From Callorhinchus milii (Eukaryota), in NCBI RefSeq assembly GCF_018977255.1, contig NW_024705357.1, positions 1-51,900 on the forward strand: a stretch of 51,900 bases of DNA, given 5' to 3'. Both the position numbers and the translations under genes were made by a program. The notes beneath the pieces are model-generated. The model was not told where the DNA came from. It searched no databases and saw only the letters and a program-made list of their open reading frames with translations. The stretch's first letter is position 1; each line of letters begins with the position of its first letter. Below, one piece after another: positions 1-47,226 of this stretch.

Positions 1-600
1 AACTCCTGCAGCGCTTGGTGTTCCTGGTAAGTTTGCTCAAACCGTACTATCTGTGCCACTCAGCATTTACTCTGTGCTCTCACTGCAAACTCCTATCATG
101 TTACCTCATTATCGTACTTATCTCGCTCCATTTACTAATGAGAATTATTGCAAAGCGTGAGACCTCGCAAAGCCCTTTACATAATTTTACTGTGAAATAC
201 AATGACTGTGTATTTGTAGGCGATCGCAGCAGCCTGTCATTTTCACCGAACCTTATGGACATGTTCCTAAACCTAAGGGCAATATCTATTGGGTAAACAT
301 CAAAAGCAGATGAGCTCAGATGGTTACACTCCTGCCGAGTCAGTTTGCCTCAATCTAGTCAGAGGGTTATGGGCCCAAATTTGCCACTTTGTTCTCGCCT
401 CAGCCAAACCGTGTTCTTATCCCAGTTTCATCGTAGAGTCCAAAGACAACCCAGGATCCTCGACTCCACCACAAATCAACTGCTACACACAATTGCCATG
501 AACCGCACATTATCTGCTCCATTTCACAATGTGATAAGCTGATAGAATTTATCGATGCTCTCTGTTGTCTCCAACTTTGTTATTGCCCACCCCCCCCCCC

Positions 601-1480
601 CAACAACAACAACAACAACAAGATTCCATTTATAGAGCGCCTTTCACGTCAGGAGGACGTCCCAAGGCGCTGCACAGTTGGGTCATGACCCGAGCAGGGG
701 GGAAATGGTCAGGGTGAGGGGAGGGAAGGGAGGGAGAGAGGAGGGGGGAAATGGTCAGGGTGAGGGGAGGGAAGGGAGGGAGCGAGGAGGGGGTAGAGAG
801 TCGAGAGGGGAGCTGAAGGCACGGTCAAAGAGAAAGGTTTTGAGACCGGCCTTGAAGGAGGAAAGGGAGGAAGCGGCGAAGGCACTGGGGGATGGAGTTC
901 CAGAGCCTGGGTGCTGAGAGGCTGAAGGCCCGACCACCGATGGTAGGGCGGTTGGGGCGGGGGACGTGGAGCAGACCGGAGCCAGAGGAACGGAGGGTAC
1001 GGGCAGGTAGGTCGGGGGATAGTAGGTTGGAGAGGTAGGAGGGAGCAAGGCCGTGAATGGCCTTGTAGGTGAGGATGAGGATCTTGAAATCAATCCTCTG
1101 GGGGATGGGGAGCCAGTGGAGGCGAGCGAGGGTGGGAGTGATGTGATCGCGAAGCCTGGTGCGGGACAGTACACGAGCTGCAGAGTTCTGAATGACCTGC
1201 AGTGTGGAGGGAGGTGGAGGGAAGGCCGGCGAGGAGAGAGTTCCCATAGTCCAGCCTTGAGGTGACAAAGGCGTGAACCAGGGTTTCAGCAGCGTGAGGG
1301 GTGAGGTAGTGCCAAAGTCTGGCGATATTCCGGAGGTGATGAAAGGCGGTGCCAGTTGTGGTGCGGATGTGAGGGAGAAAGGACAGCTCAGGGTCGAACA
1401 AAACGCCGAGGTTCCTGACTGGCTTTGAGAGGTGGAGAGTGCAGCCTTGGATGCTGATGGTGTCAGCGCCTCCAATCCAC
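601..1480 (-). mobile_element. 5'-truncated L2-clade LINE in the GPCR copy A intron
   Basis: Minus frames give L2 RT C-terminal motifs (FDPELSF..HI, VHAFVTSRLDYGNSLL, LHWLPIPQRIDFKIL). (GTT)n tail at 601-620 and a ~42-bp tandem duplication in the 3' UTR at ~701-790. Confidence 0.92.
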
Positions 1481-1743
1481 TAATACCACTCCTCCGCCGA
1501 CGTACACACATCACTCCATCCATACATTTCGAAAAGAGTAGGGGTTTCTTCCGATCTTGTTGGACATATTAAGAAAAATTAAGAAAAATAGTCTCTTTGT
1601 TTTCTGTCACTCTGTGATTGCTGTTTTGGGGACATTGCTCAATGCAAATACCTTTTCTATCGACGGCTACATAGACATTCACTGCACTTTACAGATTATC
1701 CTTCTGAAATTTTGGTATATACGCCGATTATTTGTATTAGGAA

Positions 1744-2060
1744 TCCTGTAGCTCAGCGGATAGAGCACTTGCCTCGCAAGTTAGAGACCTGGGTTTCATT
1801 CCCGGCAGTGCGGAACCTTCGGCAAATTTCCTTACTCCATGCGCCTGAGAATAATAATTTAAAGAAAAAAATATTAATTTTGTTACTCAATTCACGTTTC
1901 TGGGGACACTGCTGTGCGCAGTTGATTGATTCATTTGGCGTTTTGCCAACAAACAAACAGACAATTTACCTTTCAATATATTCTGTGAAGCGCTTTGCGT
2001 CGCCAAGAAGACATAAAAAGCACTATATTAAATGCTAGGATTATTATTCTTATTCCTATT
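1744..2060 (+). mobile_element. tRNA-headed SINE with L2-like 3' end (mirror copy ~12340-12652, minus strand)
   Basis: A-box/B-box head (tcctgtagctcagcggatagagc...gggtttcattccc), family core (gggacactgctgtgcgcagttg), tail tgaagcgctttgcg...aaatgctaggattatt. Confidence 0.85.
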
Positions 2061-2433
2061 ATTACGTGTCAAAGGTTATAGTCGAAAATCAGAAGCACAA
2101 GTTGTAATATTTGCTGAAGTATTATATTCCACTTGAATTTAGAATTTGTGTTGAAATAACACACAAATGAAACCACATGAATGTTCCGACATTTATTGTC
2201 CTATTATTTGCAGGTTATGACTACTTTTATAAGTAACGCACAATTCTCTTCTAATGTTTTCGTTGGTGAACTGAGCTTAATTTCTAACTGGTATTCAGAC
2301 TTAAAATGCTTTGTAAATTGTTTGCAGGGAGAAACGTTTTTTTCAGTTGTCAATAGTCATTCTTTGTTTCGAACGCTATAATTAATGATCCTCAATGTGC
2401 AGAAGTTTTTTACGCAGTATATGGACAATGTGT

Positions 2434-2550
2434 AGTCCTGCAGTTCAGTGGTTACTGAATTTGTCCGGCAAACGAGAGGACCTGGGTTTGATTCCCGGGC
2501 AGGAGAAGGCAAAACCTTGGGCACGTTTCCTTACCACACTTCTCTATTCG
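2434..2550 (+). mobile_element. SINE head fragment (mirror ~11840-11955)
   Basis: gtcctgcagttcagtggtta...gacctgggtttgattcccgg...aaccttgggcacgtttcctta matches the other SINE heads. Confidence 0.75.
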
Positions 2551-5500
2551 AGTAGCATCGAGAGGAACGTGTTACCAGTCGTTTTTCGGGTAATAGTCCC
2601 TAACCCTAGAAAAAAAAGGAAGTTAATCAAATAAAGATGAATCTGATCAGTCTTTCTTCTTATTTCTTTCTCAGTTAATTTGATGGCGATTGTGATCTTG
2701 TGCCGGGGACAGTGCGGTCTCTCCACATGCATCACCCGCTACCTGGTGGCCATGTCAACGGCGGACACTCTGGTCATTATCTTTGACGTTATTTTGGAGC
2801 AGATAAAATCTTGTATTACTTGCTTTTCGTTTCATGCGTCTGACTCCTGTGTGTAACCTTCACGCCATCCTGCTTTATGCCTCCACAGACAGCTCAGTGT
2901 GGCTCACACTGGCTTTCACCTTTGATCGTTGTGTCGCTATTTGCTGCCAGAAGCTGAAAACAAAATATTGCACTGGCAGCACAGCGACTGCGGTTATAGT
3001 GACAGTGTTCGTGCTGAGCTGTGTAAAGAACATCCCCTGGTATATAAAGTATGAACCTTTCTTCATATCAGAAAATATGTGGCTGCAGTGCCTCCCAGGA
3101 CGCAGATTTCTCTCAACCACATGGTCACCATTTGAGTTGCTTCACTACACTTTAAACCCGTTGCTACCATTCGCGTTGATTCTGTTGTTGAATTCTCTAA
3201 CAATGAGACATATTTTCGTCTCTAACAGAGTTCGTAAGTCACTCCGAGGCCACAGCAATGGGAAGAATCACAGTGACACAGAGATCAGGAACAGGCGAAA
3301 ATCCATGGTTTTACTGTTCACCATTTCAGGCAGTTTTATACTGTTGTGGGCCATGTATTTTATCATATCCCTATTGTATCGATTAATAACAATGGAGATT
3401 GTGAAACCTATCGTCTACTTATTTAACTTTCTAGAAGTTGGGGACATGCTTCGCCTGCTCAGTTGCTGTACAAACACGTTTATTTACGCGGTGACTCAGA
3501 CTAGATTCAGACAGGAGGTAACGAGGGCCATCAAGTGCTCATTTGCTGCTATTCTTAAATTCTTTCAATTTTAAAACCCACAGTCGAAATCTTCCGATCA
3601 ATTGAAGTGAGCGCAGCTGTCCTTCCAGTGTCCAGTCACCACGAATCCGCTTTGGGATAGAGTTTGATAGAGAGGGCAATTGGGGAGAAAGAAAGTGACA
3701 GAAAGAGCACCTGTTTGGTCAGTGTGAACCGTGTGGAGAAAGTGTATTTGAAGAGAAAGAGAGAAATGGTCATAGCAAAGAATTGGTTGTGTTTCGGAGG
3801 AAGAGATTGTAATAAAGGGAGAGACTGTGTTTGAAATTGTGTGTGTTTCTACACTGATGCGATTAGGTTGTATAAAATAATATGAGGAAATATTCTGAAC
3901 ATTGGAAGTGAGTGCAGCTCTCATCCCAATTCATAGTCACCTTGAGCTGTCGGTCAGTTAAAATTGAACAGCGTGACTTTATGTGATAATAATCACATAA
4001 ACTAGAATTGTTCTCGCCGAAGACTAATGAAACATTAACTTGATAACTTTATTGTATTGCTATGTCATTTGCCTCTAATAGAAAATTACTGAACATTTGT
4101 ACTCTTGTGCTTTCAAATGAAATTTCGCTGCTGTCATTAATTTTGTGTCTTTTGTAAAATTGCAAAATAATGTATTATAGTTTCTAATGTCCTTACTTTT
4201 CTTCTCGTTTACCTGGTTAACTGTTTGAAATGACAAGTGTATGTTTTCCTTTTGTAAAATATCCTGGCTATTCATGTGGAAACCGTTGCAGTGTGAGAGA
4301 GATGATCAGTGTTAGGTGAAGAGTGAGGTGGAGAAATTGTTTAACTATAAGGATTTCCATTGTTTCTCTCCAATCAATCATATAGAGAAGGAAGATGGAA
4401 TGTTTTCGTAAGATGTTTTGTGGGATGAGGAAGGGCGCGGCGCTGATGTGGAGTAACAATTAGGGAAACGGAGTTTGTGAGATGAAGCAGATTCAGGTCG
4501 CAAAAATATGTTTGTTAACATGTATAAATATCGGGCACTTATCAGCATGCAGTTGGATCAGACCCGGGAATGCAGAAGATAATGAAGATGACGGGAAGAA
4601 AATGATAGCAAGAGTATAATCTATTTTTGCCAAATTAACTATATTGTTCTGTATCATGCACATTGTTATATAAACGGTGTACAATTAATTTCCATCTGTC
4701 TGTTTGAGCTTCATTGTCTCGACGTTTCGAATCACTCAAACACACAAAAAAAATTTGAGCCCACAATTTGATTTTAATTCAATAAACTATTGAAATATTG
4801 CAGTAAAAATCAGTCAATACACGTGCACCAGGTACACACAATCCTCATTTCTAAGCTGCCCCATTTGTCCGAACATTTGAACACTCACCAGTCCTGCACT
4901 AGTGTCACACACATCTAACATGTCGGGAGCATCACTGGTTACACTGAGCGGATCTGCACTCTTAGCACAAGGATTTTCTGTGGGATTGTCATCCAAGACA
5001 CAAGGAGACAACGTACCTCTCTAACATGTTGGTGTCAGAGCCATGCATTGTTTTACACAGTTTTTCAAACGTTTTATAATGATCCGATTTGGAGATGATT
5101 TCCACATTGTTTGCTCACCCCGTCTTCCCCTTGGTTTCCCCAAACCCCTCCCCCCACACAAAAAGCCCCCACATCCCCACCCTCCCCACCCCACCCAACA
5201 TTGGTTTTCGCCTCAACCAACCATTCCTCTTAGTCATTTCTCTCCTCGTTATTATTCTTCCAGTTGTTCAGTCACTGCACACAGAAATTCTGGAACATTC
5301 TCGCTCAAGCCCATCGCCTTCCACCACCCTTCCGTTTCCTCACGGCGCAGCTGATGACCTTCACCTTTGATCATGCTGACAGTTACCGTCCAAATTATCT
5401 ACAGCTCAGCATCAGGCCCCGTCACTCCTAAGCGCTCTGGGCCCTATCCTGCGTAACTGGCGCTAAAACAGTTCACGTGTTTTTTATTGTTGCAACCGGA

Positions 5501-6162: not shown

Positions 6163-9100
6163 AACAACAACAACAACAACTACAAGATTCGATTTAGAAA
6201 GCGCATTTTACGTCGGGAAAGGCGCTATACAGTTGGGTCAGAACCCGAGCAGGGGGGAAATGGTCAGGCTGAGGGGAGGGAAGGGAGGGAGCGAGGAGGG
6301 GTAGGGAGTCGAGAGGGGAGCTGGAGGCACGGTCAAATGGAAACGTCTTGAGTCAGGCCTTGAATGAGGATAGGGAGGAGGCAAGGCGAAGGCAATGGGG
6401 GATAGAGTTCCAGAACGTAGTGGCTGAGAGGCCGAAGGCACGTCCACCGATGGTAGGGCGGTTGGGGCGTGGGATGTGGAGCAGACCGGAGACAGAGGAA
6501 AGGAGTGTACGGGCAGGTAGGTAGGGGGATAATAGGTCGGAGAGGTAGGAGGGAGCAAGGCCGTGAATGGCCTTGTACGTGAGGGTGAGGAACTTGAATT
6601 CGATCCTCTGGCGGATGGGGAGCCAGTGGAGGCGAGCGAGGGTGGGAGTGATGTGTTCCCGAAGTCTGGTGCGGGACAGTATACGAGCTGCAGAGTTCTG
6701 AATAACCTGCAGTGTGGAGGGAGGTGGCGGGAAGGCCGGCGAGGAGAGAGTTCCCATAGTCCAGCCTTGAGGTGACAAAGGCGTGGACCAGAGTTTCAGC
6801 TGCGTGAGGGGTGAGGCAGTGCCGTCGTCTGGCGATATTCCGGAGGTGATGGAAGGCGGTGCCAGTTGTGGCGCGGATTTGAGGGAGAAAGGACAGCTCA
6901 GGGTCGAACAGAACCCCGAGGTTCCTGACTGGCTTTGAGAGGTGGAGAGTGCAGCCTTGGATGCTGATGGTGTCGGCGCCTGAGGTGCGGTGGTGCTGAC
7001 GTGAACCAATCAGGAGGGCCTCGGTTTTGCGTCCGTTGAGCTGAAGAAAGTTATCTCTCGTCCAGGACTCGATGTCGGACAGGCAGCTGTCAGGACATCG
7101 GTGGTCGTGGAGTTGAGGGTCGAGGAGGAAAGTTAGAGTTGGGTGTCATCCTCATACATGTGGAAGTTAACCCCATTTCTGCGGATGATTTCACCAAGGG
7201 GGAGCCTATAGAGGGTGAAGAGGAGGGCACCAAGGACAGAGTCCGGAGGGACAATGCACGAGACTGTGCCGCGCCCGAGGAAAAACCATTCGTGCAAACA
7301 AAGTGAAGACGGTGGGAGAGGTACGACCTGAACCACTCAAGGTCAGGGCCTTGAAAGTTGAGGTGGGAGAACAAGCGGTGGAGTAGGATAGCGTGGTCGA
7401 CCCTATCGAATGCTGCCGATAGGTCGAGGAGGACGAGGAGGCAGAGGGAGCCCTGGTCACAGATGGTCAGGATGTCATTGGTGACCTTGACCAGGGCAGT
7501 TTCTGTGCTATGGGCAGCACGGAAATCTGACTGAAGGGGTTCGAATAATGAATGCGTGGAGAGGAAAGAGCGCAGCTTGGAGGCGAGAAGTCGTTCCAGG
7601 ACCTTGGACAGGAAGTGAAGGTTGGAGATGGGCCGGTAGCTTGATAGCTGCGACGCATCAATGGGGGGTGTTTTCAAGGTGGGTGTAATGTTGGCAATTT
7701 TTAAGGGAATGGGAACAGAGCCAAAGGAGAGGGACAGGTTGACGATGTCTGTTATGTATGGGGCGAGGAGGTGGAGCTGGGAGATAAGGAGCAGAGTGGG
7801 GATGGGGTCAAGGGAGCACGTGCTGAGTTTCAGAGATAGAATGATTTTGGTGACGGAGGGTGGGGAAAGGGGTACGAAATTATGTAGGGGAGGATGGGTT
7901 GGAATCGGAGTATGGAAGCGAGGGGGTGTTTGTTGGGTGGATGTTGGAGGGGAAGTAACTGTGGAGCGAATTCGCTTGATTTTGGATTCAAGGAAATGCA
8001 GCATCTCCTCGCAATGAAGGTTGGAGGAGATGACCTACGTGGGGTCGTGGGGGGGATGGAGGACTCGAGATGTGGTAGAAAACAGTAGCCTGGGGTTGTT
8101 CTTCTCCTCCAGGATTATCCTGGAGTAGAAGGATAATTTGGACCAAGCTTGAGTGGACCGGTAGATTTTGAGGAGGTCCAGCCAGTTTTGTCGGTGGACC
8201 TTTAGGCCAGATTTGACGCAGGTGCATTCAGCGGCCCGCACCTGGCTCTTCAGTGAGCGGAGGTGGATGGTGAACCAGGGGGACAAGCGAGAGTAGGAGA
8301 CAGTACGGCAGGTGATGGGGGCAAGTGAGTCGAGTGTGGAGGGCTGGGTGTTGTGGAAAGGGTGAGAGGAGAAGAGAGGTCAGTGAGGGTTGAAGGCCAG
8401 AGGGAGAGGAGTTCAGAGGACTCCAAGGCAGCGTTTAGGGATTGTGGGGGTAACTTCTTCCAGGGTCGTTAGAAGATGGTGGTGGTTCTAGTGGAGGTGG
8501 AGAGGGGATGGAGGTGGTGAAGGAGATGAAGTGGTGATCAGAGACAGCCTAGTTTGTAATGGTGACATCCGAGACACTGAGGTCCCAGGCGATCACCAAG
8601 TCGAGTGGGTGGCCGTGACTATGAGTGGGGGAGTTGATTTGGAAGGATAGATTAAGCGAGCAGAGCAGGAAAGAGAAGTCTGAGGAGATGGAGCAGGAGG
8701 GTGTGAAGTGCAGGTTGAAGTCGCCCAGGATGCTGAGGTGATCAGAGCAGAGGCAGAGAGATGTAAGAAGTGTTGAAATATCGGAGATGAAGGGAAAGGT
8801 TTTAGGGGGCCGGTAGAGGAGGAGGATTTTGAGTGAGAGGAAGGAGGAGTGGGAGAGGCTAAGGTGCACACAAGAGGGGAAAGAGTCAGAGGAGTAGGGC
8901 ATAGGGCATGTGGTGTTCTTGGGATAAAGGCTACTCCAGCGCCACGGCGGTTGGGGCGAGTGATGTGGTGGGAGGTGTAGCCGGGTGGTGTGGCCTCCGT
9001 GAGGGGGAAGGTGTTGCCTGGGGTGAGCCAGGTTTCCGATAAGGCCATGATGTCAGTGCTCTCATCAAGGATGAGATCCTTGATGACCAGAGCCTTGTTA

Positions 9101-9650
9101 CAGAGGGAGCGGATGTTTTGTAGTCCGATTTGGATGGAGCGGTTGACAGAAGGGTGTGTGGGAGGGCAGTGGGTCCAGGTTGTGAAGCAGGGGTGTGGGA
9201 AATGGGGATAAAGGAGGAGAGGTTGGCTCCCCGTGTCTGTGTCCGTGGTGGCTGGCGAGTGTAGTGGGGAATGGGGCAGTCGGTGTGGCTGCTGCTGGAC
9301 AGCCAACGCCGAGTGCCACGGTGAGCCCGGCGGAGGATTCCCAGGCTGGAGCAGAGGATGGTTGTAGGAGGGTCAAGTGGGGATAGAAGGCGAGAGGGAC
9401 GGAGAGAAAGGAGGACAGAGCGGGAGACATGCAGAGGGGGGAGGGTTTCGGGGAAGAGAGGAGGGAGGGGGTGAGGGGCCTTGGGTCATAGCGGCAGCCA
9501 TAGTGCGCACATGGGGACCAGGAGCGAGCTGTCAGGTGGATGGAAACATTATCCCATAGGCTGGGGCTGGGACAGCCAACCCAACAGGACCATGGTGGGC
9601 CCTGATGTGAGCCCTGGGGAGGGTCGCAGAGGTTTTTATTTTTTTGTGCG
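6163..9650 (-). mobile_element. Near full-length decayed L2 LINE ORF2 (APE endonuclease + reverse transcriptase) with multiple frameshifts
   Basis: Endonuclease motifs LQNIRSL, LSETWL, RRGAGVA (8593-9306) and LLYRPP, ILGDFNLH, HGHPLDLV (8549-8902). RT motifs YRPISNL.FLSKVLE, QSDFR..HSTETALVKVTND, LLDLSAAFD, YEDDTQL (7090-8004). (GTT)n tail at ~6163-6180. 5' boundary approximate. Confidence 0.93.
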
Positions 9651-10693: not shown

Positions 10694-10723
10694 NNNNNNN
10701 NNNNNNNNNNNNNNNNNNNNNNN
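10694..10723. other. Assembly gap (30 N)
   Basis: Run of N. Confidence 1.
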
Positions 10724-10794: not shown

Positions 10795-13700
10795 ATTTCG
10801 ACTGTGGGTTTTAAAATTTAAAGAATTTAAGAATAGCAGCAAATGAGCACTTGATGGCCCTCGTTACCTGCTGTCTGAATCTAGTCTGAGTCACCGCGTA
10901 AATAAACGTATTTGTGCAGCAATTGAGCAGGCGAAGCATGTCCCCAACTGCTTGAAGGTGAAACACGTGGACGGTAAGCTCCACAATCTTCATTGTTGCT
11001 AATCGATACAATACGGATATGATAAAATACATGGCCCACAACAGTATAAAACTGCCTGAAATGGTGAACAGTAAAACCATGGATTTTCGCCTGTTCCTGA
11101 TCTCTGTGTCACTGTGATTCCTCTCAATGCTGTGGCCTCGGAGTAACTTACGAACTCTATTAGACACTAAAATATGTCTCACTGTTACAGAATTCAACAA
11201 CAGAATCAACGCGAATGGTAGCAACGGGTTTAAAGTGTAGTGAAGCAGCTCAAATGGTGACCATGTGGTTGAGAGAAATCTGCGTCCTGGGAGGCACTGC
11301 AGCCACATATTTTCTGATATGAAGAAAGGTTCATACTTTATATACCAGGGGATGTTCTTTACACAGCTCAGCACGTACACTGTCACTATAACCACAGTCG
11401 CTGTGCTGCCAGTGCAATATTTTGTTTTCAGCTTCTGGCAGCAAATAGCGACACAACGATCAAAGGTGAAAGCCAGTGTGAGCCACACTGAGCTGTCTGT
11501 GGAGGCATAAAGCAGGATGGCGTGAAGGTTACACACAGGAGTCAGACGCATGAAACGAAAAGCAAAGTAATAACAAGATTTTATCTGCTCCAAAATAACG
11601 TCAAAGATAATGACCAGAGTGTCCGCCGTTGACATGGCCACCAGGTAGCGGGTGATGCAGGTGGAGAGACCGCACTGTCCCCGGCACAAGATCACAATCG
11701 CCACCAAATTAACTGAGAAAGAAATAAGAAGAAAGACTGATCAGATTAACGTTGATTTGATTAACCATTCTTTTTTTTCTAGGGGCTAGGGATAATTAGC
11801 CCGAAGAACGACTTGCATCACGGTTTCTGCTCGATGCTACTCGAAGAGGGATGTGTAGAGTAAGGAAACTTGCCCAAGGTTTTACCCTCTCCTGCCAGGG
11901 AATCAAACCCAGGTCCTCTCGTTTGCCTGACAAACTCACTAACCACTGAACTGCAGGACTACACATTGTCCATATACTGCGTAAAAAACTTCTGCACATT
12001 GAGGATCATTAATAGTAGCGTTCAAAACAAAGAATGACTATTGACAACTGAAAAAAACTTTCTCCCTGCAAACAATTTACAAAGCATTTTAAGTCTGAAT
12101 ACCAGTTACAAATTAAGCTCAGTTCACCAACAAAAGCATTAGAAGAGAATTGTGCGTTACTTATATAAATAGTCATAACCTGCAAATAATAGACAATAAA
12201 AGTCGGAACATTCATGTGGTTTCATTTGCGTGTTATTTCAACATAAATTCCGAATTGAAGTGGAATATAATACTTCAGCAAATATTACAACATGTGCTTC
12301 TGATTTTCGACTATAACCTTTGACACGTAATAATAGGAATAAGAATAATAATCCTAGCATTTAATATAGTGCGTTTTATGTCTTCTTGGCGACGCAAAGC
12401 GCTTCACAGCATATACTGAAAGGTAAATTGTCTCTTTGTTTGTTGGAAAAACGCCAAATGAATCAATCAACTGCGCACAGCAGTGTCCGCAGAAACGTGA
12501 ATTGAGTAACAAAATTAATATTTTTTTCTTTAAATTATTATTCTCAGGCGCATAGAGTAAGGAAATTTGCCGAAGGTTCCGCACTGCCGGGAATGAAACC
12601 CAGGTCTCTAACTTGCGAGGCAAGTGCTCTATCCGCTGAGCTGCAGGATTCCTAATACAAATGATCGGCGTATATACCAAAATTTCAAAAGGATAATTTG
12701 TAAAGTGCAGTGAATGTCTATGTAGCCGTCGATAGAAACGGTATTTGCTTTGAGCAATGTCCCCAAAACAGCAATCACAGAGTGACAGAAAACAAAGAGA
12801 CTATTTTTCTTAATTTTTCTTAATATGTACAACAAGATCGGAAGAAACCCCTACTCTTTTCGAAATGTATGGATGGAGTGATGTGTGTACGTCGGCGGAG
12901 GAGTGGTATTAGTGGATTGGAGGCGCTGACACCATCAGCATCCAAAGCTGCACTCTCCACCTCTCAAAGCCAGTCAGGAACCTCGGCGTTTTGTTCGACC
13001 CTGAGCTGTCCTTTCTCCCTCACATCCGCACCACAACTGGCACCGCCTTTCATCACCTCCGGAATATCGCCAGACTTTGGCACTACCTCACCCCTCACGC
13101 AGCTGAAACCCTGGTTCACGCCTTTGTCACCTCAAGGCTGGACTATGGGAACTCTCTTCTCGCCGGCCTTCCCTCCACCTCCCTCCACACTGCAGGTCAT
13201 TCAGAACTCTGCAGCTCGTGTACTGTCCCGCACCAGCTTCGCGATCACATCACTCCCACCTTCGCTCGCCTCCACTGGCTCCCCATCCCCCAGAGGATTG
13301 ATTTCAAGATCCTCATCCTCACCTACAAGGCCATTCACGGCCTTGCTCCCTCCTACCTCTCCAACCTACTATCCCCCGACCTACCTGCCCGTACCCTCCG
13401 TTCCTCTGGCTCCGGTCTGCTCCACGTCCCCCGCCCCAACCGCCCTACTATCGGTGGTCGGGCCTTCAGCCTCTCAGCACCCAGGCTCTGGAACTCCATC
13501 CCCCAGTGCCTTCGCCGCTTCCTCCCTTTCCTCCTTCAAGGCCGGTCTCAAATCCTTTCTCTTTGACCGTGCCTTCAGCTCCCCTCTCGACTCTCTTCCT
13601 CCTCCTCGCTCCCTCCCTTCCCTCCCCTCACCCTGACCATTTCCCCCCTCCTCTCTCCCTCCCTTCCCTCCCCTCACCCTGACCATTTCCCCCCCTGCTC

Positions 13701-14396
13701 GGGTCATGACCCAACTGTGCAGCGCCTTGGGACGTCCTCCTGACGTGAAAGGCGCTCTATAAATGGAATCTTGTTGTTGTTGTTGTTATTGTGGGGGGGG
13801 GGGGGGTGGGCAATAACAAAGTTGGAGACAACAGAGAGCATCGATAAATTCTATCAGCTTATCACATTGTGAAATGGAGCAGATAATGTGCGGTTCATGG
13901 CAATTGTGTGTAGCAGTTGATTTGTGGTGGAGTCGAGGATCCTGGGGTTGTCTTTGGACTCTACGATGAAACTGGGATAAGAAAGCGGTTTGGCACAGGC
14001 GAGAACAAAGTGGCAAATTTGGGCCCATAACCCTCTGACTAGATTGAGGCAAACTGACTCGGCAGGAGTGTAACCATCTGAGCTCATCTGCTTTTGATGT
14101 TTACCCAATAGATATTGCCCTTAGGTTTAGGAACATGTCCATAAGGTTCGGTGAAAATGACAGGCTGCTGCGATCGCCTACAAATACACAGTCATTGTAT
14201 TTCACAGTAAAATTATGTAAAGGGCTTTGCGAGGTCTCACGCTTTGCAATAATTCTCATTAGTAAATGGAGCGAGATAAGTACGATAATGAGGTAACATG
14301 ATAGGAGTTTGCAGTGAGAGCACAGAGTAAATGCTGAGTGGCACAGATAGTACGGTTTGAGCAAACTTACCAGGAACACCAAGCGCTGCAGGAGTT
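10795..14396. repeat. Right arm of the inverted duplication
   Basis: Reverse complement of 1-3590, including the shared intronic L2 and SINEs. Confidence 0.97.
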
Positions 14397-14506
14397 GGGT
14401 AGTAAACGGATTCAATCTTAATAATAACTTGTAATGCTGAAGAGCCCATCTCTGTGTCTGTGGTCCAGAAGGGAAGCACATCTATGATATATAGTGATGC
14501 ATTCAT
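10811..14506 (-). CDS. Class A 7TM GPCR, GPR139/142-like, copy B, intact; exon 1 14506-14371, exon 2 11712-10811; 345 aa
   Basis: Exon 1 is MNASL...ESVYYPTPAALGVP+G ending at a gtaagt donor (phase 1). Acceptor ttctttctcag| gives V-NLVAIVIL. Motifs YLVAMSTAD (TM2), VWLTLAFTFDRCVAIC (TM3), RRKSMVLLF (TM6), CCTNTFIY (TM7). 136+902 nt = 346 codons including stop. The family call is by recalled motif resemblance, not a search. Confidence 0.88.
12915..13790 (+). mobile_element. 5'-truncated L2 LINE in the GPCR copy B intron (mirror of 601-1480)
   Basis: ORF 12991-13566 has the same L2 RT motifs; (GTT)n tail at ~13771-13790. Confidence 0.92.
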
Positions 14507-16744: not shown

Positions 16745-17250
16745 ATTTTGTATTCTTGCCTGCCGATTGCCTCTCATCTCGAATTCAAGATCCGCATTCT
16801 CGACTTCGAATTCAAGATCCTCATCATCGCCTACAAGGCCACTCACGGCCTTGCTCCCTCCTACCTCTCTGACCTGCTATACACCTACTTATATGCCCGT
16901 ACCCTCCGTTCCGCTGGCTCTGGTCTGCTCCACATCCTCCGCACCAACCGCCCTACGATTTTGAGAAGATTCCAGACTTGCGGTGAGAAGGATCGTAGAT
17001 TCAATCTGTTTGGGATAGGGGAGGGAATGGATTGGAACAGGAAGAATAGTGAAAGGCTCATGAAGTACAGTGCGCGAAAGGTCACTGGCGGCAGAAGATT
17101 GGATAATAGCTGGAGTATCAGGGGGCAGAGCAGTAGAACAAGTTCGCCGTTGAGACACGGGTGTGACATATGCAAAAATGAATTTCTGGTGGGCCCAAGT
17201 GGAAAGGTAGAGGCGTAGAAGGGCCATGTTACAGATTTGAAGTGATTCGA
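16745..17250. mobile_element. Two abutting L2 fragments (plus 16745-16955; minus ~16955-17250)
   Basis: Plus: EFKILIIAYKATHGLAPSYLSDLL. Minus: HSLPYPKQIESTILL, resembling HWLPIPQRIEFKIL. Confidence 0.7.
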
Positions 17251-20075: not shown

Positions 20076-20164
20076 TCTATTTCCTTTTGCATTCTTCGTG
20101 TGTCATCCTCATAGCTTGGTCTCCCACTTATCTTCGAATCATTGGCGAATTTAGATACGATACG

Positions 20165-20480
20165 TTCTGTAGCTCAGTGGTTAGAGCACTCGCTTTGCAA
20201 GCGAGAGACCTGGTTTCAATTCCTGGCAGGGCGAAACCTTGGGCAAGTTTCCTTACTCCACACGCCAAACAATAATAATCCCATCCAAAACCCAAAGCAA
20301 TAATAAATTGATCAATTTCAATCCACTACTGTTTGTGGGACATTGCTGAGCGAAATTGGCTGCCGCGATCGCCCACAAATATACAATCAATTCACTTTAC
20401 AATGTTTTCTTTGAAGCGCTTTGGGACGTCTTCCCGACGTGAAAAGCGCTATATCAAATGCAAGTATTATTACTATTATA
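20165..20480 (+). mobile_element. Full-length tRNA-headed SINE
   Basis: tgtagctcagtggttagagcactcgctttgcaagcgagagacctggtttcaattcc head, family core, and gtgaaaagcgctatatcaaatgcaagtattatt tail. Confidence 0.9.
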
Positions 20481-21350: not shown

Positions 21351-22174
21351 CAATACAGCCATGGCACACACATTTATTTTGGAATAAATTATCTCAATTA
21401 AATTTGGTTATTCAACATATTATTTATAAATTTTACAGTAATATCCAAAATGTAAGACAGAAGTTCGGTTAAATTGGCAACGATAAATTCATCAGCATTA
21501 CAATTTCTTAATTTCTTTCTTGTGGGCGAGCTTACCCGTGTTTCTTTAGAATAAATGATCTTAAAAAAAAATGATTGTTTAATTTATTATTTATAAATTC
21601 TACAGTAATATTAAAAATGTAAGATGACAAATTCAGTTAAACAGATCAGTACTGTCCATTACACCCAAAAACTGCTCGCATCAAGCAATCCCAGAGCCTC
21701 AGCATTTGAGTCGATGGACAAATGAGGCGTATCAACGCAATCGGAAAAAAGACCTTTGAACCAGCAGTCGGCATTTTAAATTTCGCTAATCGTATACAAA
21801 GGTGTTGTTTTGCTGAAAGAAAGGGAGTGTTGCTCAGTAAAAAGAGAGCTTATTATCTGAAGAGGATTAATCTTTTCGGGAATGTTTCAATAAATGTTGC
21901 GTTTTTTTGATGAACTAATAGTATACAATCAATCTTGGTCTAATTCACTGTGTGATAAGCAATCATGCAGATGCTTTATTAAAATCTATCACGAACAAAA
22001 TCATCCCCCTTGATTCCAACCTTGTGGACTAAAAGCTGCCTCAGCTGTTTCCTTCATTGGAAATGAAAGTTATCTTTGCTTTAAAGTGTCAACGCAAAAT
22101 CGTAACAAATGCTGTGTCCAATTGAACCAAAAGTAGAGCGTCGGAAAATTAATGGTGAATTTGACGCAGCTGGT

Positions 22175-22600
22175 TTGTTCAAGATCCTCGTCCTCACCTT
22201 GAAGGCCATCCATGGTCTTGTCCCCTCCCATCTCACTGAACTGCTGACTCCCTACCAACCTACCCACAGCCTCCGTTCAGGGGGCTCTGGTCTGCTCCAT
22301 GTCTCCACCCCGACCCGCACTCACATCGGTGGCCGGGCTTTCAACCTCACTGCCCCCACCCTCTGGAACTCCATCCCCCGGTCCCCTCGCCTCGCTTCCT
22401 CCATTGCCTCCTTCAAGGCAGGTCTCAAGAACCTTCTCTTCGACCGTGCACTTTGGTTTACTCCCACTTCTTCGCCTTCCCTCACCCCTGCACCATCCCT
22501 CCCCCATGTTCGGGCCACGATACCTGACTGTTCAGCTCTTTGGGACGCCCTCCCCACTTGAAAGGTGTTCTAGAAATGTCATGTTGTTGTTGTGTTCACC
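22175..22600 (+). mobile_element. L2 3' fragment
   Basis: FKILVLTLKAIHGLVPSHL...GRAFNLTAPTLWNSIP in ORF 22109-22561, then a (GTT)n tail. Confidence 0.88.
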
Positions 22601-24899
22601 TTGTATTTTGTTGCTCCAAGTACATCGTTCTCGGGATGGTTCAAAACCCGTTCTGGCGGACCTCATGTGACTTAACAGTGACCTCCCTGAACGATCGCGG
22701 ACAACCAGAGCTGAATTGGATCGAGAGGGTCGATGTTGTACAAGCTAAGTTTAAGCCCTAACGCATAGGGTTTTCTGTGTTCGGCAAGAAGCTTGCCTCA
22801 CAGTGCTTTCATTGACAAGCTTTGGAATGTTAAACAGAGTGCTCGAAGCACTCCTGCGATCCTGCGGCGACAGCTCAACGGAATTAGGGATACAAGATAT
22901 ATTCTGAGATAATGATTTCCATGAAGATCTGCGATGTATGCAATTCCTAGTACGTTTACAATATGTGCTGCCCAGCGATTTGAGGCGTCCCCTCGACATG
23001 ACTTGCACTGTATCATATATCAGGATTAAAAATATGATTTTGAAAGCCACCGTGTAACCATTCTGGTTTGTTGCACTCAATTGATTGTTCGATGATAAAC
23101 TTCCTACAATTAAATGAAACCCTCCTCGTCTTTACTACGCTTCGATGCTAACTAACTTGGTTTCGTGTTTGTCAGTCAGTTACACACTAACTGCTCAACA
23201 TCAAAAGCACTGTAAGGCAGAAAATGATTTACTTCACGAAGAATTTTAACAAGACACTGAATAACTCAATCAACTGTAGTGTTTAAAGAAGTTGCTGTTA
23301 ACGAATATTATTCAACGTAAATGTTTCAGCAATGAGACTTGTTAAATAATAATACAAATAGTAATCCATGCATTTGATATAGCGCTTTTCGTGGCTTCTG
23401 GAAGTCAAAGATTCACAGAATTTTCGGAAAAGTGAATTGACGGTATATTTGGATATATTTGCAGTACCCAATTAAGCAGCGCAGTAACCCACAATTCCTC
23501 AAGCACTAAAATACCGACTGTCACAGTGCACGCTAACCTTTCGACGTTTTATGGCTTGTGATAGTGATTGACTTTATTGTCGTGGATTCATTATACTGTG
23601 GTGTTTCCTCTTGTTGCGCAACAATATTCTGAGATTTCAAATCAATTCAGATTGATGTTCTGCAGATATTATGTCCTGTTTGACACGGCATACATATACG
23701 TCAAACGTTTAATCACATTATACGTAGCAGACAGTCAAAATTCTAACATCGGTACCTCTACATGACTTGGGGTACAAAATTAGGAAACGTAGATAATTGA
23801 TATAAATTACAGGCATTTCCATGCGATACGAAACAATCAGGTGGTCGACATCATTGGTCATCAGTTCAGCAGAAACTTGTGAGTAGAGAACTGAAATACA
23901 TGGTTGTAAGAACACAACCCTTTAAAATCTCTTATCATCAATTTGAATAAAGATTTGATACTTTTCTTCAGTCACCGATTAATGACTCTTTCCTCCGACT
24001 CCTAGTTAAACATTATTTCTTCCAATCCCAACATCCATGATATTATGCTGGGAGTTGTACTGCAGAGTTGAATCAACCGAGGCATTCCTTCCCCATATTC
24101 ACCGCCATTTTCGAAACTTATTTCCATGATCATTCCATTCTTAGACAGTATCCAATTCCCAATGGTCGATTGGTGGTTTGATGTAGATGACTGATGTGAG
24201 CACGCGCCTCACAAGCGAGAGAAACATTTTCGATTCAGGCAGGGTGAAATATTTGCAAGTTTCCTTGCTCCACGCGCCTCTCCTTACAATGCGGTAAAGA
24301 GGAACTCTCCTGTTAATCGACTCTCGTGTCTCTTTTCCAGTGGAAATAAATGCTACATTAAAAGAAAGTAATAAATCTGTCACTCAATACACAACTATTT
24401 GTGGGACACTGCTGTTTCCAATAGGTTGACGAGTTTTGACCAAAATACATGCAGTCAATCCACTTTACCGAACATTCTGTGAAGCGCTTGGAGACGTCGA
24501 TTAGATGTGATAAAAAGCTATGAGAAATGCAAGGATTATTAAAATTGATATTTTTTGGGAGATGTCAACATCTCCTGGAATCCTTCATCCTAAGCGATAG
24601 ATGATGTGCAAGTAGAAATTAATTATGTCCTCTTCCTCTATGTCAGAAGGCCCATGGCCTCGTTTTCTTGTTTGGTTCTTTTGACCCAGGAACAGTCCAT
24701 CCTCTTTGTTCGCATTCCTTCCCTCCGCCATTACATGCTTCCAATTTTTAGCATCATCTGCAGTCTTGGAGTCAGTATCCACATCCATGAGGAAGACATG
24801 TATATCTACTTTCCCATTTCAATTTGCGAAACAGCCACTGATATTGGCTACCGTTGCTTCCCGGACATCACGAACGATTTGGTCACCTGTGTAGGAGGG

Positions 24900-29388: not shown

Positions 29389-30245
29389 TGGTTGGAGAGC
29401 ACAGTAATACACAGCGCTGTCAGACAGCTCCAAAAGGAAGATGGTTAAACAACAGGATTTTGTCGAGGTTTGGAGCTCAACAGAGAAGCGCTTCTCAGCA
29501 AAGTCTGCTTTATATGTGTTACCATTGGAATACTTCTTAAGCATATACTGTGGTTGTCTTTCTTGTTGTTCCCGATACCAGTGTAAATAGTAGTCGCTCA
29601 GAGACGTATCATCATGACAATCAATGGTCACACTTCCTCCTTTTTTCCCAGTCACTGAAGCCACCTTCTGTGTCACAGAGTCTCCCTGGGTCAGGCCTGA
29701 AAGACAAGAGCGTGGAGTCCTGCAGCTCAGTGGTTACAGCGCTCGCCTCGCAAGAGATACGACACGGGTTCGGTTCCCGGACAAGACAGGGCACAAGCTT
29801 CGGCAAGTTTCCTTAACACACACACCAACGATTACCCAACCATAACGAGAAAACTATTAGTGAGTCAATCAGCCGATTGCTTTCCGTGAAAAATAATACC
29901 ATCAAATAGAATATAAAAGCCTTTTAAAGTGCGTTCAATAAATCCTTTATTATTCAGGGGACACTACTCAATAAAATTAGCTACCGAGTCTTCCCCACGA
30001 AATACACAGTCACTGCAATTTATCGTATATTCTTTGAAGCGCATTGAGGCTTCTCGAAAACATGCTGAAGCGCTGTATCAAACGCCATTGTAATTATTAT
30101 TTCGTTTAATAATTTGAGCAGACAAGTGAAATCGATTCAGTTAAATGATTTAAAAAAATGATTGAAAGATTTAAAATTGTTACCATGGATTACCTATTAA
30201 AATGGCAACGAGAGCCAGAAACACACTGGCTCCCTCCAACCCCAT
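29389..30245 (-). CDS. V2: TCR alpha/delta-type V segment, apparently functional; leader 30245-30194, V exon 29696-29389
   Basis: Leader MGLEGASVFLALVAILI+G|gtaatc. Acceptor ctttcag|. V reads LTQGDSVTQ..VTIDC..LHWYR..RFSVELQ..SDSAVYYCALQP. Confidence 0.9.
29713..30100 (+). mobile_element. SINE in the V2 leader-V intron, antisense to V2
   Basis: Head ggagtcctgcagctcagtggttacagcgc...gggttcggttcccgg begins ~17 nt from the V2 acceptor; degenerate core and tail follow. Confidence 0.8.
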
Positions 30246-31746: not shown

Positions 31747-32629
31747 TTTCCAATGGGAAAGTAATTGATATAATGGAAGAGTTGGAGATAAAAGGTTGCG
31801 TCTTGAATTGTCCTTGAAAACCGTGATGGGAGCAATATTCAACGCAGCACTGCTGAGCAACTTCCTTGCGTCAGAAGATTGGGTTACAAGCCCCACCTCC
31901 GGATTTGAGAAGCCTGTACATTAATATGATTGTAATTCTGTGAGTGTACTGCAGTGTAGTGTCGAGTCATGTATTTGTTGGAAAGTTTGCTAGTCAAACG
32001 AAACACCAGGGTTCGATTCCCAGGCTGTCCGAAACATTAGGCAAGTTTGCTTCCTCCACACGCCTCTGTTTGCCAGGCAGTAATTAGATTGTTACCTGGT
32101 TGGCTGATTGCTTTTCTGGGGAGTAATTATTACTTGAAAAATGAATAGAAATAATAATAATTTCGTCACTCAATCCAAGCATCCTTGTGGGACACTGCTT
32201 AATGTCGGAAAAGAACAACGAGAACCATATTGCATTTGTTGAGCGCCTTTCACGACGCGAGGACGTCTTAGACAGAGTTATGTGTCCGAGCTGGGGGTCG
32301 GGTTGGGGCAGGTTGGAGGGTGGTGGGAGAACCCATGGGAGAAACAGGAGATCGATAGCACTGACGAAGAGGAGGGTGTTGTGATGGGTCTTGAAGGTGG
32401 CAGGGGATGTGGCGATGCGAGGTGAATGCGTGAAACGACATAAAGGACTTCACAGGATAGACTGTCATGTGCGGGGACTGTATTTTATGTCTGTTCTGCA
32501 TTCCGTCTTCTTTCTTATTGTCAAACATACAATACTCCAAATGTATTTGAATGTTTTCCTTTGCAGACAACACTTAACAACCTGGTACACCTGGCTTTCA
32601 TTACTTGTGGAGTCCTGTAGCTCAGTGGT

Positions 32630-32930
32630 TAGAGCACTCGCTTTGCAAGCGAGAGACCTGAGTTGAATTCCAGGCAGGGCGAAACCTTGGGCAAGTTTCC
32701 TTACTCCACACAGAGCCTAATAATAATCCCTTCAAAAAACAAAACAATAATAAATTGGTCATTTTCAATCTACGTTTGTTTGTGGGACATTGCTGTGCGC
32801 AATTGGCTGCCGCGTTCGCCCACAAATATACTGTGATTTCACTTTACAGTGTGTTCTGTGAAGCGCTTTGGGAAGTCCCCCCGACGTGAAAAGCGCTATA
32901 TCAAATGCAAGGATTATTATTATTATTATT
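32630..32930 (+). mobile_element. Full-length SINE with a tRNA-Ala(TGC)-like head
   Basis: gagtcctgtagctcagtggttagagcactcgctTTGCAAgcgagagacctgagttgaattcc, family core, tail ...aaatgcaaggattattattattatt. Confidence 0.92.
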
Positions 32931-38899: not shown

Positions 38900-39199
38900 C
38901 TGGAACAAGAATGTCCAACATAATTTGTCTAGCAAGGCCAAGTGGGCCGGTAGCAGCCATCAGTCGGAACCCAGCATTTTACATAATGCCTTACTATGTC
39001 TCCCGGCATCTCAAAACCCTTCACATGATTCTAATTATCAAGTGTTCTGTCTGTGTGTTGATCAGAAAACATGGCAGCTTAATTAAACAGAATATTGTCA
39101 CACGAACAGCGATGAAGCAAGTGAAATTTCCTGGTTATTTGGTATATTGTTGCCCAGGGTATGAGGAGCAACTCGATTGTCTGTAAGAACAGTGCAACG

Positions 39200-39550
39200 T
39201 AGTCGTGCAGCTCAGTGGTTTAGAGCATTCGACTCACAAACCGGAAGGCCCGGGTTCGATTCTCGGCAGGGCGAAACGTTGGGCAAATTTCCTTGCTCCA
39301 TCAGCTTCTTTTCCTTGAAGTAAATGTTAGTCCATTACCTGATCGTTTTTCCGGTGGTAGTAATTCCTTCAAGCCAATAATAATATGGTCACGCAACCCA
39401 AAGCACTTTGTGGGACAACGCTGTGCAAAATTAGCTGCTGTATTTCTCCTACATAACTTAGAGTCAATTGATTTTGAAGTATATGTTGTGAAGCGATTTG
39501 AGACGTCTCCAAGATACAATATGGCGCTATTTCAAATGCAATGATTATTA
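39200..39550 (+). mobile_element. SINE
   Basis: gtgcagctcagtggtttagagc...gggttcgattctcgg head, core, tail ...caaatgcaatgattattatt. Confidence 0.85.
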
Positions 39551-42168: not shown

Positions 42169-42354
42169 NNNNNNNNNNNNNNNNNNNNNNNNNNNNNNNN
42201 NNNNNNNNNNNNNNNNNNNNNNNNNNNNNNNNNNNNNNNNNNNNNNNNNNNNNNNNNNNNNNNNNNNNNNNNNNNNNNNNNNNNNNNNNNNNNNNNNNNN
42301 NNNNNNNNNNNNNNNNNNNNNNNNNNNNNNNNNNNNNNNNNNNNNNNNNNNNNN
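42169..42354. other. Assembly gap (186 N)
   Basis: Run of N. Confidence 1.
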
Positions 42355-47170: not shown

Positions 47171-47226
47171 AGTACATTGCTGCAGTGGAAGCGAAGGAGC
47201 TACAGGAAGATTTCGAGGTGACTTAC

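Follow-up and report, generated by a model that had tools for sequence, protein, structure and literature searches.

Mosaic divergence between inverted duplicates of a class A receptor gene in Callorhinchus milii, and its possible origin in patchy gene conversion

Two neighbouring receptor genes at the start of contig NW_024705357.1 of Callorhinchus milii (assembly GCF_018977255.1; positions 1 to 51,900 of the forward strand, 51,900 nucleotides in all, hereafter the window) differ in one short patch by a dense run of amino-acid replacements. The first-pass annotation attributed the patch to diversifying selection on ligand specificity in an expanded family of orphan receptors. The question raised by the locus is whether selection on amino acids accounts for such a patch, or whether the divergence between the two genes has another source.

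An inverted pair of two-exon receptor genes

The gene pair consists of young inverted duplicates of a two-exon class A receptor gene. The arms of the duplication, window positions 1-3590 and 14396-10795, are 96.7% identical over the 3605 columns of the blastn alignment. The background divergence of copies A and B is about 2%, with 11 indels over 3.6 kb, and the homology between them stops 16-20 bp beyond the stop codons. The order and orientation of copy A relative to copy B rest on a join of 30 N. The arms and gene models are organized as follows:

1..3590, plus strand: arm 1, which carries copy A and is truncated by the left edge of the window (blastn, per-segment differences)
1..26, plus strand: final 26 nt of copy A exon 1, followed by a GTAAGT donor and identical to copy B 14396-14371; the remainder of the exon lies outside the window
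2675..3574, plus strand: copy A exon 2, from the end of TM1 to the stop codon, with a broken reading frame; TTTCTCAG acceptor immediately 5' of 2675
2812..2826 (about 2815-2822), plus strand: copy A frameshift in the ECL1 segment, two 1-bp losses in T runs, net -2 (alignment with copy B)
10694..10723, no strand: run of 30 N, 88 nt beyond the copy B stop codon (sequence)
10795..14396, minus strand: arm 2, which carries copy B (blastn against arm 1)
10811..11712, minus strand: copy B exon 2, intact, an ORF of 298 aa (Pfam 7tm_1 E=6e-18, AlphaFold2 model)
14371..14449, minus strand: copy B exon 1, ATG plus 26 codons plus 1 nt, GTAAGT donor (weak, repeated tblastn matches to N-termini of the family)

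Splicing of the two copy B exons gives a protein of 326 aa with no internal stops, and the intron interrupts TM1. The Pfam 7tm_1 profile matches copy B with 65.7 bits against a cut-off of 30.5 (E=6e-18) and the copy A ORF with 59.5 bits (E=4.6e-16). The tblastn match to copy A exon 2 falls into two frames, 2680-2814 and 2822-3571, and the frameshift could be either a genuine lesion or a homopolymer-length error of the assembly.

The divergent patch and the mosaic profile of the duplicate

The comparison of the two arms identifies the following segments of raised divergence:

2466..2642, plus strand: non-coding island in the intron, inside a tRNA-derived SINE, 31 difference events, 17.5% (A/B alignment)
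3197..3263, plus strand: coding island, cytoplasmic end of TM5 and ICL3, 9 differences per 67 bp (codon alignment)
3371..3436, plus strand: patch in copy A, ancestral-type version, 29% G+C (21/22 residues as in the Callorhinchus protein P0001)
10949..11014, minus strand: patch in copy B, derived or odd version, 42% G+C (alignment, outgroup comparison)

The codon alignment of 3371-3436 on the plus strand with 11014-10949 on the minus strand contains 15 nucleotide differences in 12 of the 22 codons, and all 12 are amino-acid changing. This observation of the first-pass annotation is confirmed, and each of its counts was reproduced, including the two residue differences in the first 121 codons of the ORF starting at 2834 (codons at 2990 and 3008) and the seven replacement and two silent changes of the TM5-ICL3 stretch at 3197-3263. 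Its statement that none of the patch differences is purely synonymous is true per codon and fails per nucleotide, where the Nei-Gojobori method counts 13 replacement differences and 2 silent ones, the latter being third-position changes within the double-hit codons AAA/GAG and TTA/GTG. The differences are distributed over the three codon positions as 8, 5, and 2, there are 3 double-hit codons compared to 3.2 expected, and the 10 unchanged codons contain no silent difference.

The exon-2 product of copy B was modeled using AlphaFold2 with a mean pLDDT of 78.6 and a pTM of 0.75, and the helices of the model correspond to the end of TM1, TM2-TM7, and helix 8. In the numbering of the model, the TM6 helix comprises residues 201-238, the loop 239-247, and the TM7 helix 248-273. 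The patch (residues 232-253) thus covers the end of TM6, the whole of ECL3, and the start of TM7, as had been proposed. The clustering of the differences is far beyond chance: none of 20,000 permutations of the exon differences placed 15 of them in a 66-bp window (maximum 13), and the binomial probability for the patch window itself is 5e-8. The patch is bounded by identical flanks of 107 bp upstream and 24 bp downstream.

Divergence along the duplicate forms a mosaic, with values in order of 0/400, 2.4%, 17.5% (the intronic SINE), 1.8%, 5.1%, 22.7% (the patch), and 3.2%. One 400-bp block is identical between the copies, and three short islands, located in the intronic SINE, in TM5-ICL3, and at the end of TM6, ECL3, and the start of TM7, reach 13-23%. 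In the head of the SINE, the derived states are divided between copies A and B. Decay of CpG dinucleotides was rejected as the cause of the SINE island, as inspection of the alignment by eye found that most of its differences are not CpG transitions. The segment of the TM5-ICL3 island is conserved across the receptor family. ECL1 and ECL2 contain zero A/B substitutions, and their sole differences are the two 1-bp deletions of copy A in ECL1. Selection on the ligand pocket fails as an explanation for the SINE and TM5-ICL3 islands because neither lines the pocket, whereas the substitution-free ECL1 and ECL2 do.

Silent divergence is raised together with replacement divergence. The value of pS reaches 0.132 within the patch and 0.084 over the tract 3197-3517, compared to 0.021 substitutions per site in the non-coding segment 401-2465. 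The silent excess over 3197-3517, a tract whose limits were picked after inspection of the data, is about fourfold relative to the non-coding flank (Fisher p=0.006, Poisson p=0.005), and omega over the same tract is about 1.05. The full 3' part, 3197-3571, has 6 silent differences in 83.5 silent sites, for which a Poisson estimate by hand against the non-coding rate gives approximately 0.01, uncorrected for the choice of the split. Amino-acid selection cannot raise silent divergence in this way. The dN/dS of the patch is 2.2, and its ratio of 13:2 does not differ from the neutral expectation of 11.5:3.5 (p=0.29; binomial test on two sequences, with low power). The excess of replacements without a silent excess, expected under diversifying selection, is not seen in the patch, since its pS is raised. 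The features expected of a conversion tract, clustered differences, identical flanks, and raised neutral divergence inside, are all present.

Most of the change occurred on copy B. With P0001/P0121 as a single, protein-level outgroup, 16 residue changes were assigned to copy B and 2 to copy A (p=0.001), and copy B accounts for 11 of the 12 changes in the patch; at one patch site, three residues (Y, H, and N) occur. P0121 is a longer isoform of P0001 from the same Callorhinchus gene and not a fourth copy. The patch had also been read as a sign that copy A was functional until recently. The derived patch lies on the intact copy B, and copy A retains the version common with the Callorhinchus relative, so that the patch carries no particular information on the recent function of copy A. 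The decay of copy A was rejected as the source of the replacement excess, considering the 2 polarised changes on A and 16 on B. The protein-level match of the copy A patch to P0001 is compatible with conversion or with a burst of changes on copy B. From A to B, the patch underwent 11 weak-to-strong and 2 strong-to-weak changes, with G+C increasing from 29% to 42%, whereas none of five further changes polarised to copy B is weak-to-strong. The weak-to-strong excess is marginal (approximately 0.1 by estimate), given that the ancestral patch is 71% A+T.

The 'probable GPR139' family of cartilaginous fishes

Pfam 7tm_1 matches and a protein search bear out the description of the two genes as class A paralogues of an expanded orphan family. 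The search returned 1565 matches at E <=0.001, and the best 120 of these, whose E-values range from 1e-135 to 1e-87, are all 'probable GPR139' proteins or the Callorhinchus homologue. Sharks, rays, and chimaeras together account for well over a thousand distinct proteins of that name in the database. Among the matches listed, the closest relative is Callorhinchus milii A0A4W3JJF8 / A0A4W3J223, and neither window gene is present as such in the protein database. Judged by sequence, copies A and B belong to this chondrichthyan expansion. Their exon-2 products share 51-57% identity with the shark proteins (Heptranchias, Heterodontus, Pristiophorus, and others) and 80-84% with the Callorhinchus protein. 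Common to the family and the window genes are the two-exon structure with an intron in TM1 (Heptranchias genes), an aspartate in TM2, a DRC/DRF version of the DRY motif, FILLW in TM6, CCTNTFIY in TM7, and the same three hypervariable extracellular segments, ECL1, ECL2, and ECL3. The ECL3 patch of copy B is unlike that of any listed family member, and the best match besides the Callorhinchus gene shares 6 of 22 residues. The listed shark members are spread over many contigs and scaffolds.

The only solved structure at E <1e-5 is that of human GPR139 (PDB: 7VUG, 7VUH, 7VUI, 7VUJ, and 9M42; E=2.6e-13), which aligns from TM1 to helix 8 and is likewise an orphan-type class A receptor. It is distant from the window genes, and the alignment is gapped in ECL2, ICL3, and ECL3. 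Vertebrates have one conserved GPR139 gene, in contrast to the lineage-specific multigene family described here. Orthology to human GPR139 is not supported, given the modest E-value of 2.6e-13, the several gapped loops, and the 1565 matches, which do not indicate a one-to-one relationship; the name of the family reflects similarity only. In the literature searched, cartilaginous fishes are described as having a small complement of GPCRs and of olfactory receptors, and no account of the 'probable GPR139' expansion was found.

The three extracellular segments are hypervariable across the family, and the shark paralogues recombine. In nine paralogues of Heptranchias perlo, omega is 1.5 in the segment equivalent to ECL3 (LRT p=0.35 against 1, with low power) and 1.37 in the three hot segments together (p=0.18), compared to 0.31, significantly below 1, in the backbone. 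Their pS is about three times higher in the three hot segments than elsewhere (0.09-0.13 versus 0.04). The PHI test detects recombination among the nine genes (p=0.0008), and 36% of the informative site pairs fail the four-gamete test. The tree of the patch itself is better than the backbone tree by 11 lnL units. The sister genes L002 and L004, located about 0.3 Mb apart in this independent shark assembly, reproduce the pattern of copies A and B, with 11 nucleotide differences in the 66-nt ECL3 equivalent and 9 in 657 backbone nucleotides. The patch of L002 is close to that of the non-sister L005 (2 nt apart), and 8 of the 11 L004 states recur in other paralogues.

Origin of the patch and the neighbouring V segments

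Patchy interlocus gene conversion, acting in a hypervariable segment where diversity is tolerated or favoured, fits the locus better than a burst of adaptive mutation, and we assign it a probability of approximately one half. The analysis establishes the mosaic pattern, the raised silent divergence, the derived state of copy B, the hypervariability across the family, and recombination among the shark paralogues; that conversion, not point mutation, produced the patch, and that patch diversity is selected for, we infer. The 3' third of copy B (approximately 3197-3517 in copy A coordinates) would have received a discontinuous tract from an unsampled paralogue or, alternatively, would have been spared the homogenisation to which the remainder of the two copies owes its similarity. 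The densest island would lie on the outer vestibule since the family tolerates, and perhaps favours, diversity there (omega of about 1-1.5 versus 0.3 in the backbone). The lean of the patch towards replacement changes, with 2 of 15 differences at third positions, counts against conversion. A tblastn search of the window for a third copy found copies A and B only, and short-word blastn with both versions of the patch found only chance 8-11-mers in the window, so that an origin by locally templated mutation was rejected. A search by region of a database of 5.8 billion proteins for a patch like that of copy B gave two word-sharing candidates, none of which scored. A very old donor is excluded because the unchanged patch codons carry no silent change and only 2 of the 15 differences are third-position. 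The first-pass annotation had itself named a conversion patch from a distant paralogue with saturated silent sites as evidence against its proposal; the conversion half of that scenario fits better than selection, whereas a pS of 0.13 and the 10 unchanged codons free of silent difference are far from saturation and rule out a distant donor of that kind.

Gene conversion combined with diversity of the binding site is known from olfactory receptor clusters, MHC, and KIR. As in those systems, a homogenised scaffold carries short variable segments that are reshuffled among paralogues, silent divergence is raised, and omega is near or above 1 in the variable segments. The present case differs in that conversion between the duplicates is deduced in the absence of a donor. 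Hotspots of GC-biased gene conversion can mimic positive selection. They share with the patch a clustering of weak-to-strong changes (11 versus 2) and an apparent dN/dS >1; the bias of the patch is marginal given its A+T-rich ancestor.

An adaptive burst is possible, with the odds against it. In this scenario, positive selection for a new ligand specificity would have fixed about 12 independent replacements in copy B after the duplication, within ECL3 and at the tops of TM6 and TM7, and copy A would have retained the old version before decaying. It agrees with the 13 replacement and 2 silent differences, the omega of 2.2, and the charge swaps, with the polarisation of the patch changes to the intact copy (the copy A patch is identical to that of the Callorhinchus relative at 21 of 22 residues), and with the three-state site. 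The location of the patch in the hypervariable vestibule of the family, where the Heptranchias omega is 1.5 as opposed to 0.3 in the backbone, and the lack of a donor in the window or the protein database also speak for it. However, the burst requires dN in the patch to exceed the neutral divergence of the duplicate about 10- to 15-fold (0.31 versus 0.021-0.033), and omega is not significantly above 1 in the pair or in either Heptranchias test. It also leaves unexplained why silent divergence is raised, why islands occur in the intron and ICL3, why ECL1 and ECL2 are free of substitutions, and why the changes are biased from weak to strong. Of the proposed diversifying selection on ligand specificity, the family-wide hypervariability of the segment stands, whereas an omega above 1 is not significant and silent sites are raised as well.

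False duplication and mis-polishing are common hazards in the assembly of multi-copy families, and the pattern could have arisen if reads of a third paralogue were polished into copy B, or if copies A and B were two alleles of a single locus whose haplotypes had been placed head to head on either side of the N gap. The 30-N run lies 88 nt past the copy B stop, exactly at the end of the homology with copy A, and the two 1-bp T-run losses of the copy A frameshift are typical of long-read errors. An artefact is nevertheless improbable: about 2% divergence with 11 indels per 3.6 kb and three dense islands greatly exceeds ordinary heterozygosity, sister paralogues in an independent shark assembly have the same pattern, and copy B is a complete, spliceable gene of 326 aa. 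The least probable reading invokes neither selection nor a donor, and explains the patch by a local mutational cluster, such as one error-prone repair event, or by neutral drift in an unconstrained segment of copy B. Randomly scattered changes would give the observed N:S ratio, codon-position distribution, and number of double hits, and the omega of about 1 over 3197-3517 also agrees with this reading; nevertheless, neutral drift cannot give 23% divergence beside a flank at 2%, and the conservation of the patch in copy A and the Callorhinchus relative indicates constraint in that lineage. At 15 changes in 66 bp, the patch exceeds the density known for germline multi-nucleotide events. Deamination of cytosines of the AID/APOBEC type, including hypermutation extending from the adjacent V cluster, is excluded by a spectrum that is mainly A:T to G:C (8 of 15 changes are such transitions), with only 2 of 15 changes from G:C to A:T. 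The first-pass interpretation is thus supported in part: the class A orphan family, the location of the patch, and its hypervariability hold, dN/dS >1 is not significant, and the conclusion about copy A function does not follow. A dense, all-replacement patch between young paralogues resembles positive selection, and here the silent sites, the non-coding islands, and the family precedent favour mosaic conversion.

The wider point concerns the family, in which three extracellular segments evolve at omega >=1 on a constrained backbone. It is conceivable, although quite unlikely, that the 'probable GPR139' genes of cartilaginous fishes form a large undescribed ligand-recognition repertoire, perhaps chemosensory, that swaps short cassettes at ECL1, ECL2, and ECL3 on a scaffold homogenised by conversion. 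The ECL3 of copy B would then be a newly gained cassette kept by selection, and copy A an old-type gene in decay. A chemosensory repertoire would help to explain the sense of smell in fishes that have very few olfactory receptor genes of the classical type, and, if expressed in sensory or immune cells, the family would be a new receptor repertoire of vertebrates.

The receptor genes were noted to lie next to a TCR locus, and a cluster of V segments does adjoin them; such proximity is weak evidence for an immune role, given the spread of the listed shark genes. The antigen-receptor V segments, with 23-spacer RSS, are located 16-39 kb away. Five ORFs match the Pfam V-set with E from 4e-19 to 3e-9. 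TCR alpha chains lead the single-domain PDB matches, which does not prove the chain type. RSS-23-like sites (heptamer, 23-bp spacer, nonamer) follow eight minus-strand V-like ORFs at their 3' ends.

The duplicated receptor pair and its divergent patch

The window opens within an inverted duplication (1-3590 on the plus strand versus 14396-10795 on the minus strand; 96.7% identity), each arm of which carries one two-exon class A GPCR gene, copy A on arm 1 and copy B on arm 2. The products of both copies match Pfam 7tm_1. Copy B is a complete gene with a spliced product of 326 aa and no internal stops. Just the final 26 nt of copy A exon 1 fall within the window.

Features of the receptor pair
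2675-3574, plus strand: copy A exon 2, frame broken near 2815-2822
14449-14371, minus strand: copy B exon 1 (ATG, 26 codons plus 1 nt, GTAAGT donor)
11712-10811, minus strand: copy B exon 2, preceded by a TTTCTCAG acceptor
10694-10723: run of 30 N, 88 nt past the copy B stop codon
3371-3436, plus strand, and 10949-11014, minus strand: 22-codon patch in copies A and B

The tblastn match of copy A exon 2 divides into two frames, with one T missing from each of two T runs. These separate 1-bp losses, located 7 bp apart at 2812-2826 in the ECL1 segment, could represent a true pseudogene lesion or a homopolymer-length assembly error. The N run starts just beyond the end of the homology of copy B to copy A. 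Between the copies lies a non-LTR retrotransposon (7090-9306, minus strand; Pfam RVT_1 6e-16) whose ORFs encode an endonuclease and a reverse transcriptase, and fragments resembling its 3' part are found at 755-1523, 6238-7009, 12869-13636, 16748-17218, and 22109-22670.

The counts of the first-pass annotation were reproduced: the patch contains 15 nucleotide differences in 12 of its 22 codons, all 12 with an altered residue; the initial 121 codons of ORF 2834 contain two residue differences; and the TM5-ICL3 stretch (3197-3263) contains seven replacement and two silent differences. According to Nei-Gojobori counting, the patch differences are 13 replacement and 2 silent, the latter both at third positions within double-hit codons. 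The clustering is real, since none of 20,000 permutations produced a 66-bp exon window with 15 differences (binomial P = 5e-8). The placement in TM6-ECL3-TM7 also holds in an AlphaFold2 model built from a 53-sequence family alignment (pLDDT 78.6, pTM 0.75), in which the patch comprises the last 7 residues of TM6, the 9-residue ECL3, and the first 6 residues of TM7.

Mosaic divergence and the origin of the patch

Divergence between copies A and B along the duplicate
First 400 bp, 1-400 versus 14396-13997 (exon 1 end and intron start): 0 differences
Next 2 kb: 2.1%
Intronic tRNA-derived SINE, 2466-2642: 17.5%
Exon 5' half: 1.8%
TM5-ICL3: 9 differences in 67 bp
107 bp after the TM5-ICL3 island: 0 differences
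Patch: 22.7%

The difference-free first 400 bp suggests recent homogenisation between the arms. ECL1 and ECL2 are pocket-facing loops and, in the rest of the family, hot spots; between A and B they contain no substitution, and their sole differences are the two 1-bp deletions of copy A. Ligand-pocket selection cannot account for the SINE and ICL3 islands. The tRNA-derived SINE family has at least 10 copies in the window that are 71-76% alike, including 2430-2620, 11760-11965, 1744-1835, 12557-12648, 20164-20263, 29712-29821, 32606-32711, 39199-39294, and 43931-44029; the copy in the GPCR intron contains the non-coding divergence island.

The nearest relative, and the only close one in the database, is one Callorhinchus gene with two isoforms (P0001 and P0121; A0A4W3JJF8 and A0A4W3J223). 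It shares the patch of copy A at 21 of 22 residues. Upstream of the patch it differs from both copies at 13 positions, most of them within the ECL1 and ECL2 segments, and its C-terminal tail diverges as well. With this gene as the outgroup, 16 residue changes are assigned to copy B and 2 to copy A (p=0.001), or 5 and 2 with the patch left out. Therefore, the odd patch belongs to intact copy B, and frameshifted copy A is nearly unchanged. That copy A was functional until recently, as had been proposed, is not implied by the patch, but its near-ancestral state does agree with copy A having been disabled recently, or with a mistake in the assembly. The Callorhinchus relative is without 22 ICL3 residues and has an unrelated C-terminal tail past the start of helix 8. 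These oddities could stem from a faulty gene model at a lesion, in which case the relative may also be decayed.

For the diversifying selection on ligand specificity previously proposed for the patch, the counts give no significant support: the ratio of replacement to silent differences is 13:2, and 11.5:3.5 would be expected under neutrality (p=0.29). The pS of the patch is 0.132. The tract 3197-3517 has 6 silent differences per 71.8 silent sites (0.084; omega about 1.05) versus 0.021 substitutions per site in non-coding positions 401-2465 of the duplicate, with P values (Fisher p=0.006, Poisson p=0.005) that are optimistic because the tract limits were picked after inspection of the data. 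From A to B, the patch changes are weak-to-strong in 11 cases and strong-to-weak in 2, and raise the G+C content from 29% to 42%. A bias of this type is associated with conversion, but here it is marginal.

The best reading of the patch is patchy interlocus gene conversion, to which we assign a probability of roughly 0.5. The 3' third of copy B would then have received a discontinuous tract from an unsampled paralogue, or have escaped A/B homogenisation. The densest divergence island coincides with a hypervariable segment of the family. A saturated, distant donor had been envisaged, but the 10 unchanged patch codons contain no silent difference, which argues against a very old one. An adaptive burst of point substitutions on copy B is a less probable alternative: it requires a patch dN 10-15 times the local neutral divergence, and is at odds with the neutral-like ratio, the raised silent divergence, the mosaic of the duplicate with its SINE and ICL3 islands, and the marginal weak-to-strong bias. 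The conversion and selection readings are compatible, and selection may determine which converted patches last. The 30-N join beyond the copy B stop codon speaks for an assembly or haplotype artefact, which we consider improbable, and a mutational cluster arising without selection is a minor possibility, slightly less probable still.

The receptor family and paralogues of Heptranchias perlo

The database search identified 1565 proteins with E of 0.001 or better, the best 120 of which, bar one Callorhinchus milii protein, are shark, ray, and skate sequences (45-57% identity) that all bear the name 'probable' or 'putative G-protein coupled receptor 139'. The sole solved structure matched, human GPR139, is distant (E=2.6e-13), and the name therefore marks similarity, not orthology. 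The backbone and ICL3 are conserved across the family, which lacks any consensus in three segments: at the TM2 end/ECL1, in ECL2 with the adjoining helix ends, and at the TM6 end/ECL3/TM7 start. No account of the chondrichthyan 'probable GPR139' expansion was found in the searchable literature, and genome papers on cartilaginous fishes stress few GPCRs and few olfactory receptors. In kind, the phenomenon is already known: a multigene family of receptors that combines gene conversion with variable segments for binding.

Nine recent paralogues from one chromosome of Heptranchias perlo, 88-97% identical, served as the precedent.

Codon-model omega in Heptranchias (p versus omega = 1)
ECL3 equivalent: 1.5 (p=0.35)
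ECL1: 1.43 (p=0.47)
ECL2: 1.15 (p=0.68)
ECL1, ECL2, and ECL3 pooled: 1.37 (p=0.18)
Backbone: 0.31 (significantly below 1)

Amino-acid diversity in the extracellular hot segments is at least tolerated. Pairwise pS among the nine paralogues averages 0.09-0.13 in these segments and 0.04 in the backbone. The four-gamete test fails for 36% of informative site pairs, and p=0.0008 was obtained in a PHI-type permutation. The sister pair L002 and L004 (CM068639.1, 138.3-139.3 Mb, together with L005) differ at 11 of 66 nt in the patch, 0 in ECL1, 2 in ECL2, and 9 of 657 nt in the backbone, and thus resemble the A/B pair, in an independent genome, in the concentration of differences in the ECL3 patch. 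The L002 patch is within 2 nt of that of non-sister L005, 8 of the 11 distinguishing states of L004 recur among other paralogues, and the patch's own tree beats the backbone tree by 11 lnL units. These mosaic results therefore indicate that short extracellular segments have been reshuffled among paralogues with a homogenised scaffold.

The neighbouring V cluster

V-like ORFs are located on the minus strand at 27534-50755 (27.5 to 50.8 kb). Pfam V-set is matched by five of the seven scanned, eight end in an RSS-like signal (CACAGTG heptamer, 23-bp spacer, and ACAAAAAC-like nonamer), and the best single-domain PDB matches are TCR alpha chains, which makes the description of the receptors as next to a TCR locus reasonable. 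As evidence of an immune role this neighbourhood is weak, because the listed shark family members occupy many different contigs and scaffolds. Mammalian TRA/TRD loci are also flanked by receptor genes, those of olfactory receptors, a parallel that may be fortuitous.

The ORF at 46598-47494 (minus strand), for which a Pfam search returned no match, contains a V framework-3-like end ('YCC') and a J-like 'GDGTRLTVTAG', followed by about 200 His/Thr residues translated from a microsatellite of CA type; a V-J remnant, germline-joined or decayed, is one possible identity. A second N run, 42169-42354, is positioned within the V cluster.
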